From assembly GCA_010909165.1 (NCBI GenBank), contig MU008193.1, positions 62,001-126,000 of the forward strand: 64,000 nucleotides of DNA, written 5' to 3'. The position numbers were made by a program, and so were the translations under genes. Positions 2,364-49,000 of the stretch are shown in pieces. The first letter of the stretch is position 1; the number at the start of each line of letters is the position of its first letter. The stretch comes from Anthoceros angustus. Taxonomy: Eukaryota; Plantae; Anthocerotophyta. The notes beneath the pieces were generated by a model, which worked only from the letters and a program-made list of their open reading frames with translations, ran no database searches and had not been told where the DNA came from.

Positions 2364-3857
2364 CTCCCTCGACACGCTGCAGAGCTCAACTAAGAAAAGG
2401 AGGTCACTACTAAAAGAAACCGCCATGGCTACCATCTTCGGCTCGGTGTCACATCTTCTAGTCGCACTCCGACGCCGAGTCTGTCGTCGACAAAGAACTC
2501 ACGCAGAGAGCACCATCATGACCGAAAGGTACAAGTCTTCAACTTAAGTTATCTTCAGATGATGGAACAAACATGGAAAGCCTCACCAAATGAGTGATTT
2601 GTCTAGTCACATAGCTACTACAATCTACAAGTCCGAGCCCTTCTCTGTGGAAACAGTGTTTAAACTTCAGACTGTAACATCGGCCAGATTATCATCTCTG
2701 TTGACACATCAGATCTTCACTAAGCCCTCTCGAAAGATCTCTAACATAATGATGTTGAATCTCAATGTGCTTAGTGCGGGCGTGAAACATGTGGTTAGAA
2801 ACCGTATGTATGGTCGATATATTATCACATTGCGTAGGTCCCGCTTGTTGCATACCCAAGTCTGTGACAACTTCCTTTCCCACTGCCTCCTTAGTGGCTT
2901 CGTGAGAGCTTTGTACTCAATGTGGAAGATAAAGATATTGAGGCTTGTTTCCTACAAGACCAATTTACAGTGGAGCCATGAGGAAGCAATAAGCCGATAG
3001 ACTCTTCGGTGTCCGTGACGAAGCCCAACTGCATCGACATAGCAAGTCAATTGTAGACTCCTTTGCCACTAGGCTTGTAGCAGAGACCATAGTTAGAAGT
3101 ACCCTTGAGGTACCGTGATAATTCTTTTAAGTGCTACCCGTGATCCCTTCCTCGGGTTCTCGTGAGAATTGGGCAACGCATTAACAGATTAGATATGTCC
3201 GGTCTTGTCCATAAGAAACATGAGAGTGCCAACCGCCATACGATAAGGTACACTCTCCATTTTTCTCGCCGACTGTGGACAAGAAGATGAGGAGAGCTTA
3301 ACACCAACAAAGACTGGAGTGGTAGCCGCGTGCATTCTCCAAGTTGAACCTCTTGAGCATCCCGCCACATATCGACCTTGATGAAGGTAGATTGCTCCAA
3401 AGTGGACCTTTGTGTACGTGCATTCCAAGAATGTATTTAACTTGACCCGATCTTTCATTTCAAACTCCTTGCCGAGATCGCCTTGATCCGTTAACCAACT
3501 CCACATTGTTACCGGGATAACTAAGTCATCCACGATAACGCTATCAAAACAAGTGAGCTGTCCTTTGTAGCACATACAGTTAGTATCGCTTCGCTTTGCA
3601 CGAAGCCAATCTTCTTAAGATAAGAGTCAATTCTCTTGTACACGAGGACTTTGTTTGAGCCCATAAATAGAACGAAGGAGTTTACACACCTTGTGAATCT
3701 CTTATCCTCATAATCCTCGTTGATCCATGTAGATCTCTTCTTCCAAGTGACCATAGAGGAAAGTCGCATAAACGTCCAAATGATAGATGTCCAAGCAAGA
3801 CATAAAGCAAGGAGCATCCTTACGTGTGAGTAGACTTGATCGCCTTGATAGTCGATT
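2165..3857 (-). mobile_element. 5'-truncated Ty1/copia element (RT, RNase H, 3' UTR, PPT, LTR), frameshifted
   Basis: Fragments include YHLDVYATFLYGHLEEEIYMDQ, ESVPYRMAVGTLMFLM and FHARTKHIEIQHHYVRD. The sequence duplicates 4597-6118 and joins gypsy integrase sequence at ~3857. Confidence 0.85.
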
Positions 3858-4396
3858 GGGCTTGGCGTTTTGGGTTCCATGGGCAAACCGACGAGCCTCT
3901 GCGAATTTGGACACGTTGGGTGAGAAAATCGACAAGCGAGGGACACAAGCAGCAGAAGGCAAGGAAGCAGAAAGCAACGTGCGAGGGTGAAAACCTTTGT
4001 TGAACAAGAATGGAGTAACTCGGGTTGACGCGTTAGGGGCATTGTTGTAGGCAAACTCAACGAGGTGGAGAAAGTCCAGCCACCGAGTTTGGTGCACACC
4101 TGCATAAGCACGGAGTATATCCTCTAAAACTTGATTAGCTCGCTCCATAGCACCATCCGTCTAAGGATAAAAGGCAGTAGAGATACAGGGCTTGGTGCCA
4201 AGAGATGAACCGCTTGCCGGGCGGACGTAAACTGAATCATGATCGCTCACAAGAGAGCGAGGGAGGCCATGGGCACGATAAACCACTTTCGAATAAGTCA
4301 GCAGTTTGTTCAGTAGAGCATGTCTCAGTAGTGGAGGCAAGGAGCACTTGATGAGTAAGCTTATTCGTGAAGACCAGCAACGCATCAAAGCCAGTA
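3858..4396 (-). mobile_element. Ty3/gypsy integrase relic, core/C-terminal part
   Basis: Reads ERANQVLEDILRAY...LHLVEFAYNNAPNASTRVTPF...GFHP and GLPRSLVSDHDSV. It continues in frame from 14901 across the copia insertion (PRNAT|GFDALLVF). Confidence 0.85.
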
Positions 4397-4799: not shown

Positions 4800-7700
4800 G
4801 AACAAACATGGAAAGCCTCACCAAATGAGTGATTTGTCTAGCGCCACATAGCTACTACAATCTACAAGTCCGAGCCCTTCTCGTGGAAACAATGTTTAAA
4901 CTTGGGCGAGACTTCCGTAACATCTCAGATTATCATCTCTTGATACACATCGATCTTCACTAAGCCCTCTCGAGCATCTCTAACATAATGATGTTGAATC
5001 TCAATGTGCTTAGTGCGGCGTGAAACTGTGGTTAGAAACTGTATGATGATACATATTATCACGAATAAGCGAGGTCCCGCTTGTTGCATACCCAAGTCGT
5101 GACATAACTTCCTTTCCCACTGCCTCCTTAGTGGCTTCGTGAGAGCTTTGTAATTCGTGGAAGATAAAGATATTGAGGCTTGTTTCCTACAAGACCAATT
5201 TACAACAAAGGAGCCATGAGGAAGCAATAAGCCGATAGACTCTTTCGTGTCTGATCGAAGCCCAACTGCATCGACATAGCAAGTCAATTGTAGACTCCTT
5301 TGCCACTAGGCTTGTAGAGACCATAGTTAGAAGTACCCTTGAGGTACCGTGATAATTCTTTAAGTGCTACCCATGATCCCTTCCTCGGTTCTCGTGAGAA
5401 TTGGGCAACCGTGCATTAAGATTAGATATGTCCGGTCTTGTCCAGCTAAGAAACATGAGAGTGCCAACCGCCATACGATAAGGTACACTCTCCATTTCCT
5501 TTTCTCTTCGCGTGGACAAGAAGATGAGGAGAGCTTAACACCAACAAGACCGGAGTGGTAGCCGCATTCTCCAAGTTGAACCTCTTGAGCATCCCGGCTA
5601 CATATCGACCTTGATGAAGGTAGATTGCTCCAAAGTGGACTCTTTGTGTAATGCATTCCAAGAATGTATTTAACTTGACCCGATCTTTCATTTCAAACTC
5701 CTTGCCGAGATCGCCTTGATCCGTTAACCAACTCCACATTGTTACCGGGATAACTAAGTCATCCACGATAACGCTATCAAAACAAGTGAGCTGTCCTTTG
5801 TAGCACATACAGTTAGTATCCGCTTCGCTTTGCACGAAGCCAATCTTCTTAAGATAAGAGTCAATTCTCTTGTACCACAATGAGGACTTTGTTTGAGCCC
5901 ATAAATAGAACGAAGGAGTTTACACACCTTGTGCGGAATCTCTTATCCTCATAATCCTCGTTGATCCATGTAGATCTCTTCTTCCAAGTGACCATAGAGG
6001 AAAGTCGCATAAACGTCCAAATGATAGATGTCCAAGTTAAGTTCAAGACATAAAGCAAGGAGCATCCTTATCGTGCTTTGACGATGTGTGAGTAGACTTG
6101 ATCGCCTTGATAGTCGACTCCCTCTTCTCGACTATAGCCCTTGGCCACTAGCCTCGCTTTATAACGTATGCGGGCTCAACCTCTTGAAACTTGGTTTTGA
6201 GTACCCACTTGCACTTGACAAGAGTCCTTCCGGGGTAGATCCACTAACGCCCAAGTGTTATTCTTGACTAAAGAGTTATACTCATCGTCAACAGCCGCCA
6301 CTTGTTAGACTCAGTCTAGCATATGCTTCTTGAAGTGTGAGAGGATCTCCTCCTCAAACAATGTAACTCATAGCAAGAGAATAGGCGGCCGGATCAAGAT
6401 CAAGATAACCAGCTTGATTGAACTCCAAGTCAAATGGCTTCTCATTCCGAGGTGTCTTGGTAGTCTCGACGCGTAGGGTACCCACGCTGTGAACAACGAC
6501 TGTGTCTCGGGGTGATGGAGGCGGTAAAGGAATGTCTGAGCCTCTCCAAAGCATGTATGTCCCCAAATCCAGAGGCAATCGTCCTTGTGCATCATCCATG
6601 GGCCGATCATATTCTCTCGAAAGGTGAACCGGAAGAACCGGAATCGCTTGAGGTAAAGGAGCCATGAGGAAGCAATAAGCCGATAGACTCTTTCGTGTCT
6701 CATCGGAAGCCCAACTGCATCGACATAGCAAGTCAATTGTAGACTCCTTTGCCACTAGGCTTGTAGCAGACCATAGTTAGAAGTACCCTTGAGGTACCGC
6801 ATAATTCTTTAAGTGCTACCTGATCCCTTCCGGTTCTCGAGAATTGGGCAACCGCATTAAAGATTAGATATGTCCGGTCTTGTCCATTGTTAAGAAACAT
6901 GAGAGTGCCAACCGCCATACGATAAGGTACACTCTCCATTTCCTTTTTCTCACGATCGTGGACAAGAAGATGAGGAGAGCTTAACACCAACAAAGACTGG
7001 AGTGGTAGCTGCATTCTCCAAGTTGAACCTCTTGAGCATCCCTACATATCGACCTTGATGAAGGTAGATTGCTCCAAAGTGGACTGCTCTTTGTGTACGT
7101 GCATTCCAAGAATGTATTTAACTTGACCCGGATCTTTCATTTCAAACTCCTTCGAGATCACCTTGATCCGTTAACCAACTCCACATTGTTACCGGGATAA
7201 CTAAGTCATCCACGATAACGCTATCAAAACAAGTGAGCTGTCCTTTGTAGCACATACAGTTAGTATCTCGCTTCGCTTTGCACGAAGCCAATCTTCTTAA
7301 GATAAGAGTCAATTCTCTACCGAGGACTTTGTTTGAGCCCATAAATAGAACGAAGGAGTTTACACACCTTGTGAATCTCTTATCCTCATAATCCTCGTTG
7401 ATCCATGTAGATCTCTTCTTCCAAGTGACCATAGAGGAAAGTCGTATAAACGTCCAAATTGATAGATGTCCAAGTTAAGTTCAAGACATAAAGCAAGGAG
7501 CATCCTTATCGTGCTTTGACGATGTGTGAGTAGACTTGATCGCCTTGATAGTCGACTCCCTCTTCTCGACTATAGCCCTTGGCCACTAGCCTCGCTTTAT
7601 AACGTATGCGGGCTCAACCTCTTGAAACTTGGTTTTGAGTACCCACTTGCACTTGACAAGAGTCCTTCCGGGGTAGATCCACTAACGCCCAAGTGTTATT

Positions 7701-41390: not shown

Positions 41391-44130
41391 ATGGTGGATA
41401 CCCATGGCAAGCGAGCCAAACCGGCCTGGCAGCTGCAATACGAAGTGGTGGGCAAGATTGGGGAAGGCACGTACGGGCTGGTGTATCTGGCCAAAAACAA
41501 GCTTGTCCGGGGCCACACTGTTCGCACTGCAATCAAGAAGTTCAAGCAGTCCAAGGAGGGCGACGGCATCTCCCCCACCGCCATCCGGGAAATCATGGTA
41601 TCAGACACCTCGTGCTTGTTGCACTTCTCTTGTGTTGCTTGCGGTTCTGACGTGAAGATGACTGGATGCAGCTGCTGAGGGAGTGTATCCATGAGAACAT
41701 TGTGAAGCTGGTGAATGTCCACATTAATTACGTGGACATGTCTTTGTACCTGGCATTTGACTATGCTGAACATGACCTCTATGTAAGTGCTGGGGCTGGG
41801 CCTGTGTCTGTTGAAAGCGTGGATTGTTGAATTCCTCATCAGCCTGAGTTCTGAATGACAGGAGATCATCCGACACCATCGGGAGAAGCTGAACTTTTCC
41901 ATCAGCCAGTACACCGTCAAGTCTCTGCTTTGGCAGATCCTGAATGGCCTCAATTATCTGCACAGGTTAATAGACGCAGTTGCCCTACGGTTGAGCCTTG
42001 TCTGCTGTCTTGTGCTGAGTGGAATGCTCCTTTTGTGAGTTGTCTGTGCTGGTCCCACATCATCTCTCTTTGGTGCAGCAATTGGATTGTTCATCGGGAC
42101 TTGAAGCCGTCAAATATCCTGGTTGGTAAAATTATGATTTCACACACTCCAGAAGACAAATCCTTGAGAACTAGATCACAGCTGTTATTTTGTATGGGCC
42201 TCTGTGTTGCTTACTCTAGACGCTCACAGGTGATGGGTGAAGGGGAAGAACAAGGCGTTGTGAAAATTGGTGATTTTGGGCTAGCACGAATATACCAGGG
42301 TCCACTCAAGCCCCTCAGTGAAAATGGGGTATGATCCTTTGTCTCATCATAATTCCTCTTATGACATGCTTTTTGAAAATGCCGTAGGCAGTTTCAATTG
42401 GCTGTACATTGTTTCACGCACATGGCATATTAGGGCTTTGCAGCGGACATGCATTGCCTATTAACGCACTCGAACCATGTGAGATATCCTGTGCCACAGG
42501 TTGTTGTGACCATATGGTACAGAGCCCCTGAGTTGCTTCTTGGTTCCAAACATTACACCAGTGCTGTTGGTAAGCACCTCAACGCTCGTGCTTCGTGTAG
42601 TAGCAGTGTGTTGACAAACCTGAACATTTCTTTGGCTGGCCTGTCATGCGCAGACACATGGGCTGTTGGATGTATTTTTGCGGAGTTGCTCACGCTGAAG
42701 CCACTCTTTCAAGGCATAGAAGATAAAACTACCCCAAATCCGTTTCAGGTTGTTTCTGGCCTTAAAATGTCTCCTAGGTTGAGTTGCAGATTTCTACATG
42801 ACATCTGACCAATCTAGCCATTTGTGCCTGACAGCTGGATCAGCTGGACAAAATCTTCAAAGTGCTGGGTAATCTTTGGTCTTTCCTGGCATGGGGTGAC
42901 AAGTTTCATGAGAATGGCATGATGGCATCCGTGTTACTCACAACGCAGTTTCACAAATGTAGGGCATCCAACTGGAGACAGATGGCCAACACTTCTGAAT
43001 CTACCACACTGGCAAACAAATCGACAGCTTATTCAAGGACGGAAGTAGTGAGTGCATTTGAGCTTGCATTAACTAGCTGACAGTTCTATCCCTACTTTTT
43101 AACATGTTGTAAGTTGGATCTGTCCTTGTGGACAGTGAAAATGTGGGTCTTCATAATGTGCTGCAGCTGTCGCCAAGTGCTGCAGTGAAGAACCCTGCTT
43201 ACGATCTGCTTGCAAGGATGCTTGAGTAAGGACGCACAAGAGCTTCCTTGATCAGAGTTACGATGCTCTCCCTCTGCCTCTCATCCTCTCTCGGTGTCAA
43301 TGTCTGCAGATACGATCCGCTCAAGAGAATATCCGCAGCACAAGCATTGGACCATGAGTATGTTATCTCGTCTTTCGATAACAAACCTGCCTAAGGTAGA
43401 AGGTAGTCTTATATCAAAAGCTGTGTGGTGTTTCTGTTGTGTTCTTATTCTGGCAAGCTGAATTGCATCTCCAGGTACTTCAAGACCGAACCACTGCCTG
43501 GTCGCAAGTAATTCTCGTGCCTTTGTGATGTACATTCCTGTACTGTGTGAAGGCTGCCCATAAAATGCAGGCCGTCGTCGTAGTTCCAGCTCGTGACGTT
43601 GTATCCTTTAGTTCCCTTGTTCCAGGTCAGCCAGGTGAGAAAGTTGTGGCTTATCCCCCACGGCCAGTAGACTACTCCACAGATTTTGATGGCACAAGCA
43701 GCTACCAACAGCCCAGCATGGTATCCCTCCTCAATACCTTTTCAGTGCTTGAAGCAGCATGTTGTTTGATTCTATCAGTCTGACCTCGGATGTGATGATC
43801 AGATGGCTGCTGCCAGTTCCGCTGCTGCAGCTTCTGCTGCTGCAACTGGTGGCTCGGTTCACCATTCCTTGCAAGGAATGCAGAGAGTGCACAACGCCAA
43901 TGCTTTTAGCGTTAACGCGCAAGGTGTGGCCGGTATGGGAGCACACCACGTTTTCGGAAACCGACTTCCTCAACAGCAGGTCCGCTCCCAACGGTACTCC
44001 TAGTTTGCGAACAGAAGTTGTTTGATTGCACCTCAATTCACTTCTGGTCTCTCAGGTTCGTAGGCGAGATCCTCCTGGCGCGACGCAGGGATTTTATCAG
44101 CCTCCACCCAAGCAAACGAGACGGATGTGA
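41391..44130 (+). CDS. CDKE1: Cyclin-dependent kinase E-1 (CDK8 ortholog, Mediator kinase), multi-exon
   Basis: [35 protein letters not shown] (SPTAIRE is the CDKE signature), [32 protein letters not shown]; C-terminus PPKQTRRM-stop. Confidence 0.96.
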
Positions 44131-44443
44131 ATTATCGTCATTGTGATACCAACTGGTTGTATATTCTTCCACCTTCTAAAGCTAGCCATTCATCTAGCTA
44201 TTTGCTGTCGATATGAATCTCGGGTTGATACATCCACCCAGTCGCCTTCGTCCGATAATCAACTTGAATCAACTGGTATTGGGCATACTAGGATTGATGA
44301 ACAGCCTTGGAACGTGGCGCACTGCTGTCTCAAAGTAAATATTTACACGGCAAATGGACCGAAGACGAAAGCACACAGTGCAGGCTTGCAGACACAGAGC
44401 CAAGTTTGGTGCCATTCCACCTGACGGTGGAGCACTAGCAAAC

Positions 44444-45614
44444 CTACACCTTAAACTTCAGCAGACCCCATTGCTGCAGCTCACGGCGAAGTGAATGGAA
44501 AATATGGTAGAGCAGTGCCAGAATTGAGAAATTTCCTACGCTCAGATACAACCAAGGAGGAAGCTTTGACACAGCGAAAGCCAGCTGATAGACCGGGTAG
44601 AAAGAGAGGCTAGTGTCACCGACCTTCGTGAAAAGAGCACCACCCAGGATTACTCCGCTTAACAGAGCCCCGGTAATCCTGTTGGTGATGGAGGTGACGG
44701 AGGATTTCTGTGGCGCGTAAACGGTCAGGTGCGGCGACAATGGTCGATTTGTTTTGATGTTGGGTGCTGCTGTTCCAAACTGTCGTTCACCCTGCCAATC
44801 ACGGACAAAGATGTTAAACACTGGTCTGAAAAGTGACGAGACATGTGCACAAGACAGTATTCCACCAACCTTGGAGGAATCACTCTCGTTGTCCATCTTC
44901 TTGTAGACGGCATTCCCATCCTGAGTAAGCTGATCGGCACCCCCATAAGAGGAGAAACTCACTGCACGGCGAGAACAGGGTTAGCAATGCTACTGTATCC
45001 CTGCAGTATTTGTCTCCTGTGTGAGAAGAATACGGACCTTGAGCTCTGGACAGGTCGTTCATGACCTGTGTCATAAGAACCGTCTTCCAGACACCAGCGG
45101 CTCCGACAATATGCTGAGCTCTCTCGCCCCTCTGGTATGGAGTCAGAAGGTCAACCTAAGTAGACACGCCGGAACATAAACCCGTATCAAGCAAGACATC
45201 TCTGCAAACGTCACTCACAAATTGACAGCTAGAAATCCATTGGAAGCGATTACATTAAGTCCGGCCGGCTCCCTGTCCCGATCTGCGAAGGCAGGCACCT
45301 CCAGGTCCCCTGAAAAAGTGCGGGAGCCTGCAAACAGAGAGACAAAGTTAGTGGCCGAAACATTCTGCTCATTCCACTCGGACCAGCCGAGATCCGCAGA
45401 GTTCTGCAGATCCATCCATTCAATACCAAGCGGAACGAGACAGAGAACTGGCAATCGAACTTCAATACCACACAATCGGCAGAGTCCACTCACTGAAAGC
45501 GGCAATGGTGCCATTGGTAGCGGTGGCCTGCAGTCTGGAGTGGCCAGGGCTCCATGAACTCCTACATCCTGCTCTGCTGCCACTGACGAGCGCGGCCAAT
45601 GCCTTTCGCGACAT
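44444..45614 (-). CDS. SDH3: Nuclear-encoded succinate dehydrogenase subunit 3 (cytochrome b) with an N-terminal extension derived from ATP synthase beta; 5 exons, ~250 aa
   Basis: Exons 45614-45494, 45327-45254, 45155-45038, 44961-44870 and 44791-44444 are all GT-AG and sum to 753 nt with no stop. The last exon has NRPLSPHLTVY...SITNRITG...LYHIFHSLR. Exons 3-4 read VDLLTPYQRG...GAAGVWKTVL...SFSSYGG...TQDGNAVYKKM. Confidence 0.85.
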
Positions 45615-46012
45615 CTCTTCCTGCCGCTCGCGAAGCTTGATCGAAGAGCAGGAAAAAAATTTGTCGACGGAACGTAGCTCAAGAAAGACCTTCCTTCGCA
45701 GTTCGAACCCTGTCGTGGTTTGCGCAAGTTGGAACTCAGTCGTGCTGCCAAGTTCGAGCCCTAAAGCACTTACTAGCCCGCCAGAATGCAGGTCCCAGAA
45801 TTTTGGTTTCGAGAGCTTGTTCAGCGCTCAGCACAGCCCTTGCTGCTGGACTGACTCGATTCCAGCCAGCCTGAAGCAGAGTCGTGCTGCCAAGTACCTA
45901 CCCTAAAGCCACACATTAGTCCGCCAGAATTGAGATCACTGGATTTTGGTCTTAGGCAGCGGTCTTCGCCCAGCATAGCGCTGCTGCTCCATTGAGCAGC
46001 CAGCTTGCAGCC

Positions 46013-49000
46013 ATGATGACGGGACAGTCTCTGGAGCTCATGGGGGAGCGGCAGACTGGCCAGGACGTGCGCACTCAAAACGGTAAATTCGTTTCTTGTG
46101 AAGTGGTGCTCGAGTTCGTCTTTCTGTGAAGTCTTGTTCCGATCCTGGTCGTGATCTGGTCGTCGGTGGCCCTGGACTGTGGAAGTGGGCTAATTGTCTG
46201 TGTTCTGTTGACTTTTTTTGTCTAGTGATGGCCTGCCAAGCAATCGCCAACATTGTGAAGAGCTCCTTAGGACCTGTTGGCCTGGACAAGGTGCGCTTTT
46301 CTTGTAAATGCTCGATGTTGCCGCAGGATTGTTAGGAAGTGAAGTGAGCATCGCACTTTCACAGCTTGATTGTTTGTGGGTCACTTGCAGATGCTTGTTG
46401 ATGATATTGGAGATGTTACTATCACTAACGATGGGGCCACTATCTTGAAGATGCTTGAAGTTGAACATCCCGCTGCTAAAGTAGGTCTTGGTTGGCTGTT
46501 CTTCATTTGCATGTTGGAGGATCTATTCATTGGAGGTTCATGATGCAAAACCATACTTGCCCAGGTCTTGGTCGAGCTAGCCGAGTTACAAGATCGAGAG
46601 GTGGGAGATGGGACGACATCTGTCGTCATTATTGCAGCTGAGCTTCTAAAGGTGTGCTTTTTTAACCGAAAGCTGGGAAAAACTCTTCGTCTCTTGAGGG
46701 TCAGCATGATGAAGTGAATGTGGTACGTTTAATCGCAGAGAGCAAACGACCTGGTGAGGAACAAGATTCATCCAACTTCAATTATCAGTGGATACAGGGT
46801 AGGCTCCCTTACTCTGGTGTGGGTTTTGTCACCACGTCTTTGATGTGTCTCATCTCTTAGGATTGTTGGAGATAACCACTGTGATTGACTTGTGAGTATT
46901 CTTATTGCCTGAGCTTCACAGCTTGCAATGCGAGAAGGGTGTAAGTTTATTGAAGAGAAGCTCACTTTGAAGGTCCAATATGCTCGAACTCAAAGGCTAT
47001 GAATGTCATCTGCTACTTTTTGAAGTGTTGTGGTGTGAAATATCTTGATGCTGTATTCTTGCGTACAGTATGTTTCTCTCAGAAGTGAATCCTGATGCAG
47101 GTTGAGAAGTTGGGGAGGGAACCTTTGGTTAATTGTGCGAAAACTAGTATGTCATCCAAGATCATTGGTCCAGACAGCGAATTCTTTTCCAAACTGGTAT
47201 TTGTCTGACACTACCTAACATGAGGCCCGTCAGTAAAAAAGGCCTAAATCAAGATGTCTGCAGGTTGTAGATGCTGTGCTTGCTGTAAAGGCAACCAATG
47301 ACAGGGGTGAAGTCAAGTATCCAATTAAGGTGTGTACATCTAGCCTGGCTTCACCAATATCCCAGGGTTTTGTCTGGTTGCTGTTTCACGAGCTGGTTGG
47401 AGATAGCTGGCTCCTTTGTTGAGGAATGGAATGTCGTCTCCCTGCAGTCAATCAACATATTGAAGGCTCATGGAAAGAGTGCACGGGAGAGTTACCTTTT
47501 GAATGGATATGCCCTCAACACAGGCCGTGCTTCTCAGCAGATGCCCAAGCGCATAGTGTCGGCAAAGATAGCTTGCTTGGATCTGAATCTCCAGAGGACC
47601 AAAATGCAGATGGGTGTGCAGGTCCTTGTAACTAATCCTCGTGAGCTGGAGAATATTCGAGCAAGGTATGGTCCGAGCTGGCAAGGTTGCTGCTTGTTGA
47701 TTCCGTTTCAGCCAGCAGGATCCTAATAGGCATCTTTCTGCATCTTTCAGGGAATCAGACATAACAAAGGAGCGCATCCAGAGAATTTTGGATGCAGGTG
47801 CAAATGTCATATTGACAACCAAGGGCATTGATGATATGGCTCTCAAGGTTGGTATGTACATAGTTTCTGAAATTTTCAGTGTTAAGACGTGTGAGACGTT
47901 CAGGTTTCCACGGATTAACCATTGCCTGTTCCATCTGCAGTATTTTGTGGAAGCAGGAGCCATAGCTGTTCGTCGGGTTAAGAAGGAAGACTTGAGGCAT
48001 GTCGCAAAGGCAACTGGTGCAACCCAGGTAAGCTGATTCTATGGCTTCAGAGAGTACTTCTTCAGGATGTCAAAATGTGATGAAAGTCTGCCTTGCCTTG
48101 CAGATTCTCAACTTTGGGGACATGGAGGGAGATGAAACATTTGATCCGTCCTTCCTAGGGTCAGCTGAGGAGGTGGTGGAGGAACGTGTTGCAGATGATG
48201 ATGTCCTTCTAATCAAAGGGGCCAAGAGCTCACGTGCAGTAAGTCCTTCCCTCCTTTGCATCTCAATTTTGCAGCAGTATGGTAGAAGAGCTTTCTTGTT
48301 ATCTCAGGTGCATGCTTGTGGGTAGGTCTCAATTATCCTTAGGGGAGCCAACGATCATATGCTGGATGAGATGGAGCGCTCCATCCATGATGCTCTGTGC
48401 ATAGTGAAACGCACATTGGAGTCAAATTTGGTAAGTCTTGCAACACATGTCACCAGTGACCATTGCCACTCGCTGAAAGCCACGATGGGTTTGAATGCTC
48501 ATTTCAATGGCTACAGGTGGTGGCTGGAGGAGGTGCAGTGGAAGCTGCTCTGTCGGTTTATCTTGAGAATTTGGCCACCACGCTGGGTTCTCGAGAACAG
48601 CTTGCCATTGCTGAATTTGCCGAGGCACTTCTTATTATACCTAAGGTTTGTAAGAACATGGCTATGTCTTCCAATATCTTTCTGCGTCAAGGGAAATTGG
48701 ATGTGCTGAATTTGACCTACTTTAATGTGTCTTCGGTTGTAGGTACTAGCTGTGAATGCAGCAAAGGATGCTACTGAGCTGGTTGCAAGGCTACGTGCGT
48801 ACCACCACAATGCACAAACAAAAGCTGATAAGCATCATTTGTCTGGGTAATATTCCAAACAACACCCTCACTTATGTTCTAGGCCTGCAAAGAACAAGTC
48901 TGTAACAAGAGCACTCAGGTTGTTAACTCTTGTGAATGACGTACTGTGGACTGCAGAACGGGACTGGACCTCGTGAAGGGCGCTGTTAGAAATAATATTG

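Follow-up and report, generated by a model that had tools for sequence, protein, structure and literature searches.

In angiosperms, 14 of 14 independent transfers of sdh3 to the nucleus took their presequence from existing nuclear genes (PMC4045975), and the account given there, together with Adams et al. 2001 as cited in it, describes an hsp70-derived leader for the Arabidopsis sdh3 and an hsp22 fragment for that of Gossypium and Rhazya. The presequence of rice rps11-1 was copied from atp2 according to Kadowaki et al. 1996, as cited in PMC2631504, and in maize and rice rps14 resides in an sdh2 intron. Here we analysed a locus of the hornwort Anthoceros angustus, located on the minus strand at 45614-44444 of a 64,000-nucleotide stretch of contig MU008193.1 (GenBank assembly GCA_010909165.1, positions 62,001 to 126,000 of the forward strand; this whole stretch is called the window). 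It is very likely that the locus is a working nuclear SDH3 gene, coding for a membrane anchor of complex II, in which a core derived from mitochondrial sdh3 stands behind a decayed fragment of F1 ATP synthase beta and a presequence-like exon. An earlier reading, made from the letters alone (hereafter the sequence-only reading), had proposed an in-frame ATPbeta-SDH3 chimera, and this overall view is supported by the spliced RNA, the beta homology and the SDH3 core described below.

The locus resembles the angiosperm SDH3 chimeras in that the sdh3 core is nuclear and placed behind a presequence and a retained piece of a mature host protein. In both, an intron lies close to the junction and the core has no third helix. 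Unlike in those chimeras, ATP synthase beta and not a chaperone was the donor, a seed-free plant is the host, and the fusion is common to two lineages with saturated synonymous sites, and therefore much older than the family-level events of angiosperms. As in rice rps11-1, a gene that left the mitochondrion owes its N-terminal part to an ATP synthase beta gene, but the cargo there is a ribosomal protein and the similarity is to the presequence, whereas about 85-95 residues of the mature nucleotide-binding region have been retained here. As in the case of rps14 and sdh2, the transferred gene borrows upstream exons of its host via splicing; however, the host product is still made there by alternative splicing, whereas here the host copy is a dead partial duplicate.

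Re-homing of mitochondrial genes with captured host fragments is thus known already, including SDH3 proteins that keep parts of a mature host protein. HSP70 fragments were found upstream of Sdh_cyt in three of ten long SDH3 homologs (P0009, P0044 and P0051; in P0051 covering HSP70 profile positions 1-119, E 1.2e-48), and these three are independent cases of such retention. What is new is the donor (the mature region of ATP synthase beta), the lineage of the host and how old the fusion is, and what goes beyond the textbook picture is a captured host fragment under long-term purifying selection. No published account of an ATPbeta-SDH3 fusion was found in a literature search of incomplete coverage. 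The results show that capture of a host gene by sdh3 is not limited to angiosperms but occurs in a seed-free lineage too, where it used a new donor.

Gene structure, expression and the SDH3 core

Rebuilding the gene from the window sequence gave five exons separated by GT-AG introns within 45614-44444, with a stop-free coding sequence of 753 nt for 250 amino acids and a TAG stop. This is identical to the model of the sequence-only reading, and every peptide string quoted in it is present. An RNA-derived Logan contig from the same organism (run X1) has 0 mismatches to the window and skips exactly the four predicted introns, which on the minus strand are intron 1 (45328..45493, 166 nt, phase 1), intron 2 (45156..45253, 98 nt, phase 0), intron 3 (44962..45037, 76 nt, phase 1) and intron 4 (44792..44869, 78 nt, phase 0), all GT..AG. 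The joints in the RNA are at 45326/45493, 45153/45252, 44961/45038 and 44790/44869, where CT..AC on the plus strand corresponds to GT..AG on the minus strand. In run X1, 64% of the words sampled from the 1.5-kb stretch are present, about as a spliced transcript with its untranslated flanks would. The same four joints were observed in runs X2, X16 and X22, which come from three other organisms and are about 92% identical to the window overall (roughly 88-97% by exon). The predicted five-exon splicing is borne out in this way, as spliced contigs join the beta-like exons to the SDH3 exon in four organisms.

The coding pieces of the four taxa align with zero gaps and the frame is intact throughout. 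Breaks in the alignment at 45148-45153 (X2) and 45126-45153 (X22) are stretches replaced at equal length, which preserves the frame, and the indels among relatives are confined to the untranslated flanks (44140, 44366, 44422-44425, 45665-45694 and 45870). The spliceosomal introns together with the CDK-like and CCT-like neighbour genes place the gene in the nucleus. A GC content of roughly 48% and the short introns agree with a hornwort origin. Scans of the locus for tRNA and Rfam families gave no match. Intron 4 was spliced out in 4/4 RNA assemblies. A separate observation on this intron is that its 78 nt are in frame and without stops (ORF 44444-44962), and its retention would lengthen the stretch that separates the beta remnant from the SDH3 core by 26 residues.

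Exon 5 (44444..44791, minus strand, TAG stop at 44446-44444) consists of a variable linker followed by an SDH3/SdhC core with the RPLSPHL motif and two transmembrane helices. Its earlier assignment as the SDH3 core holds, with a match to Pfam Sdh_cyt (PF01127) at E 1.9e-13 and 51 bits against a cut-off of 25.8. Aligned to 19 homologs and E. coli SdhC, the core retains the residues that correspond to Ser27 and Arg31 of the SdhC quinone site and to the heme ligand His84. Loss of the heme ligand (RH to RR) had been suspected and was ruled out, as E. coli SdhC His84 aligns with a conserved YH that is present here. The core ends shortly after helix 2, and without the third helix it is not a canonical three-helix SdhC; the third helix is likewise absent in many N-terminally extended, presumably nuclear, SDH3 proteins of the same alignment. 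Plant SDH3 lacking a helix has been described before, with SDH6 proposed to supply the missing part (PMC5855863, PMC10231475), and the two-helix core agrees with that view.

Could the locus be a transcribed but non-functional relic, with the working SDH3 encoded in the mitochondrion or by another nuclear copy? The data come from one genome window only and the expression depth of assembled contigs is not quantitative, which leaves some room for such a reading, but we consider it very improbable. The frame of 250 codons is intact in four taxa without indels, the differences listed for the SDH3 core against close relatives of the window organism comprise about 9 synonymous versus 4 amino-acid changes, the key residues are kept, and an intact orthologue is present in a distant lineage. 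Moreover, sdh3 is a pseudogene in the mitogenomes of Anthoceros angustus, Phaeoceros laevis and Nothoceros aenigmaticus and intact in Leiosporoceros (PMC6082510 Table 2). Such pseudogenes are what an old nuclear replacement would predict. The sequence-only reading had asked whether the mitochondrial sdh3 is lost or degraded, and in the published Anthoceros mitogenome it is degraded. The chimera also offers a nuclear marker by which to date when hornworts lost the mitochondrial gene.

The ATP synthase beta remnant and its age

Exons 2-4 are homologous to F1 ATP synthase beta and collinear with about residues 116-198 of E. coli AtpD, the spliced exons of the window aligning to residues 134-198, and the homology is well beyond chance expectation. 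Exon 2 (45254..45327, minus strand, 74 nt) is weakly beta-like (..EVPAF..) and matches by its order the residues just before the nucleotide-binding core. Exon 3 (45038..45155, minus strand) is the remnant of the P-loop region: its 39 amino acids alone, searched against all PDB sequences, gave 56 matches, of which 55 were F-type ATPase beta in the P-loop region (best E 1.2e-4), and it matches positions 5-38 of the 213 in Pfam ATP-synt_ab (PF00006) with 17.6 bits, below the cut-off of 29.5. Exon 4 (44870..44961, minus strand) corresponds to the beta strand and loop after helix B, the F1 beta equivalent ending ..GVIK, and aligns up to AtpD residue 198; searched alone against Pfam it gave no match.

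The Walker A motif, which the sequence-only reading had described as crippled (GGAGVGKT to GAAGVWKT), is indeed destroyed, because the Gly required before the Lys in GxxxxGK[TS] has been lost, and it is inactive. Of the beta subunit, the N-terminal barrel and the C-terminal domain are missing, as is most of the nucleotide-binding domain, and tblastn with E. coli AtpD found no further beta segments in the window or at the orthologous locus L001 described below. With the destroyed motif, the Pfam score below cut-off and the other domains missing, exons 2-4 are a remnant and not a member of the ATP-synt_ab family, and the lack of further beta exons in the window is the ground for regarding the host beta copy as a dead partial duplicate.

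A distant orthologue was found with a word-indexed search, in which the ORF spanning exon 4 to exon 5 was searched against an index of 5.8 billion proteins and gave a single match, P0001. It leads to L001, a Logan contig of 8.2 kb that has SGT1 and uL6 genes as nuclear neighbours. A chimera of 260 amino acids is encoded there by exons at 3043-3181, 3326-3396, 3560-3772 and 3862-4221. Its beta part is better preserved than that of the window, with 38% identity to E. coli AtpD in 74 residues from residue 116 and collinearity with residues 116-198. All 58 PDB matches of its beta-like exon are of beta type (57 F-type ATP synthase or F1-ATPase beta and one G1-ATPase beta; best E 4.6e-8). The Walker A position reads GAATGVRKP, inserted residue included, and does not conform to the motif either. 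The SDH3 cores of the window and L001 are 68% identical, and in a HMMER search with an SDH3 profile, which gave 551 homologs, P0001 was matched with E 4e-56 and the next best of 1.84 billion representative proteins with E 1.4e-19. Among the best 150 of these homologs a beta-like extension was found in L001 only and in none of the other 149. A metagenome scan gave 13 loci, all distant SdhC-like and without beta pieces, and a word-indexed search with the L001 beta-like exon returned only the query's own fragment, with no ATP2 exons or further orthologues. One representative, P0003 (337 amino acids), has the same SDH3 sequence twice in tandem, seen as two matched stretches, which is probably an artefact of assembly or gene calling.

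The two chimeras have three introns in common, namely intron 1 in phase 1, which splits an AGC Ser codon identically in both, intron 2 in phase 0 just before V(V)DLL, placed within one codon in the two copies, and the intron at the junction of the beta-derived and sdh3-derived parts (intron 4 of the window), in phase 0 between ..K and G-E/Q-R. Further states common to both are derived with respect to beta: GGAG has become GAA, the Walker Gly has become W (TGG) or R (CGG), I has changed to M in the helix and D to A after GN. A one-codon insertion near the P-loop is private to each copy, and exon 2 of the window has a deletion of 5 residues compared to L001. Since the introns, their phases and the derived changes are common and the SDH3 cores are mutually closest, the chimera arose once, before the split of the window and L001 lineages. 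Independent capture of beta fragments in the two lineages might be considered because angiosperms have seen many separate transfers of sdh3 (PMC4045975), but such convergence is extremely unlikely: it would have to produce identical fragment boundaries, the same three intron positions and phases including the identically split Ser codon, and the same derived substitutions in the P-loop, in genes whose SDH3 cores are by far the closest to each other (E 4e-56 vs 1e-19 for the next). The surroundings differ between the copies, as the L001 chimera is located between an SGT1-like gene (353-1845) and a uL6/Ribosomal_L6 gene (5052-5877) and the window copy between the CDK-like and CCT-like genes.

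Selection on the remnant and its possible role

Selection was evaluated from Nei-Gojobori counts between the window and L001, with shuffled codons, that is, unrelated sequences of the same composition, as a control. The control gave pS 0.73 and pN 0.72 +/- 0.03. In the SDH3 core pS was 0.72 and pN 0.20, and in the presequence 0.61 and 0.35. The 95 codons of the beta part had pS 0.72 and pN 0.43 (bootstrap confidence interval for pN 0.36-0.51); within it, the gapless alignment of the P-loop exon (exon 3 of the window) gave pS 0.80 and pN 0.30, and exons 2 and 4 together gave pS 0.66 and pN 0.52, values that may be affected by alignment bias. The synonymous sites are fully saturated, since pS of 0.72 equals the 0.73 of shuffled codons, and as the amino-acid signal persists nevertheless, the beta remnant is held by long-term purifying selection, with a constraint weaker than that on the SDH3 core. 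The claim that the gene is under selection, made earlier from the preserved frame, is thereby confirmed: the frame is intact in four taxa, and pN is below the shuffled control in both the core and the beta part. Two deeply diverged copies thus show that a captured fragment of a mature protein is not a neutral spacer. The linker at the start of exon 5 (44724-44790) behaves differently from its surroundings, with apparently about 19 substitutions in 67 nt in X16 by subtraction (39 differences in 44302-44790, 20 of them listed elsewhere). It is far more variable than the flanking untranslated region or the core, has indels between the window and L001 as well, and can be called hypervariable.

Exon 1 (45494..45614, minus strand) begins with the start codon at 45614, contributes 40 codons and 1 nt of an Arg/Ser/Ala-rich, presequence-like leader, and is included in the RNA contigs. 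The first 45 residues contain 6 K+R, 0 D+E and 13 S+T, with no acidic residue before position 48, a composition that looks like that of mitochondrial presequences in plants. The R-T-F|S at residues 43-46 agrees with the -3R processing motif and suggests a first cut after the presequence. The product is predicted to be targeted to mitochondria. Hydrophobic proteins typically have long leaders when their genes have moved to the nucleus, and yeast F1 beta carries redundant import information beyond its presequence. The N-terminal residues, about 135 in number, probably function as a long import leader, which would carry the hydrophobic two-helix core via TOM/TIM23 into the inner membrane, where the core would then assemble with SDH4/6/7 under SDH1/2. 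The core in exon 5 derives from mitochondrial sdh3 and is expressed as the last exon of the five-exon nuclear gene, and exons 2-4 are a catalytically dead fragment of an F1 beta gene, reaching from just before the P-loop to just past a later strand, most likely donated by nuclear ATP2 for the mitochondrial enzyme.

Several observations weigh against this interpretation or parts of it. The sequence-only reading expected mitochondrial beta as the best match of exons 2-4; the matches are significant and nearly exclusively to ATP synthase beta, but mitochondrial beta is not singled out. The best PDB matches alternate between mitochondrial and chloroplast beta and the scores do not separate the two: the best match is 6rd4_X for exon 3 of the window and 22vl_E for the beta-like exon of L001, and chloroplast chains score equal to mitochondrial ones. 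Only two diagnostic positions favour mitochondrial beta, the Q in PYQRG and the F in the GGFS equivalent. No homologs of exon 1 were found when both copies were searched against Pfam and PDB, which gives no support to an origin of the presequence from ATP2. Intron 3 is present in the window organism and the three close relatives but not in L001, so that at least one intron has been gained or lost after the fusion. In close relatives the beta exons diverge about two times as much as the SDH3 core (X16: 26/284 nt vs 13/280 nt, the latter for the listed part of the core), and an invariant residue of beta has changed, as VDLL, found in beta, the window and L001 alike, is VDPL in close relatives B and D. 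For the beta part among close relatives omega is about 0.6, a rough count-based guess, as the positions of the substitutions are largely unlisted. Constraint on the beta remnant is weak over the short term.

The equal scores of chloroplast chains are also what speaks for a different origin, in which not ATP2 but plastid atpB inserted in the nucleus, or some other F-type beta gene, gave rise to the beta-like exons. We regard this as unlikely, because the segment lies behind a presequence-like exon and is cut by old spliceosomal introns common to two lineages, the window keeps the two mitochondrial-type residues, and a case of ATP2 as presequence donor is already known (PMC2631504).

The persistence of the amino-acid signal raises another question, whether the dead P-loop fragment is kept for a job of its own, either as a permanent matrix-facing extension or as a sequence-specific module for import or assembly. 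This is possible, but we put it forward tentatively. If true, such a module might be recognised, for example, by chaperones or receptors that serve the beta precursor, and the biogenesis of complex II would then be tied to that of complex V. In the first form, the remnant would stay on the mature SDH3 as an extension of about 90 residues on the matrix side of complex II, where its sequence would have a role, for instance in assembly, in contact between subunits or in place of plant-specific accessory parts. The pN values of the beta part and of exon 3, well below the shuffled control despite saturation, are in line with this, as are the position of the likeliest motif for the mitochondrial processing peptidase before the beta part and the retention of the remnant in two deeply diverged lineages. 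However, the rate of change in the remnant is 2-3 times that in the SDH3 core, each lineage has its own in-frame indels, the Leu to Pro change has occurred in close relatives, and a fragment without most of its original fold is unlikely to fold alone. Also the mature SDH3 of Arabidopsis runs at about the size of the core only. A permanent extension is therefore a doubtful possibility, and the long import leader in front of a working SDH3 core remains our preferred interpretation. Why hydrophobic proteins transferred from organelles retain long stretches of soluble host proteins in their leaders is a question that can now be tested with this gene.

Neighbouring genes and the upstream repeat

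Upstream of the gene, a direct repeat of about 72 nt (45738-45807 and 45880-45950; 76-87% identity, spacing 142-143 nt) was observed in the gap of about 400 bp between SDH3, whose start codon is at 45614 on the minus strand, and the divergent CCT-like gene, whose start codon is at about 46013 on the plus strand. The repeat had no tRNA or Rfam match, and it could be a duplicated promoter element or a member of a small repeat family.

In all four organisms, single RNA-derived contigs cross three genes on alternating strands (43802-46294). They contain plus-strand introns at 43977-44052 and 46082-46224 in addition to the four minus-strand introns of SDH3. These contigs are overlapping transcripts merged by an unstranded assembler and not one RNA, which means that the 3' end of the SDH3 transcript overlaps with that of the CDK-like gene and that the 5' region is overlapping or shared with the CCT-like gene.

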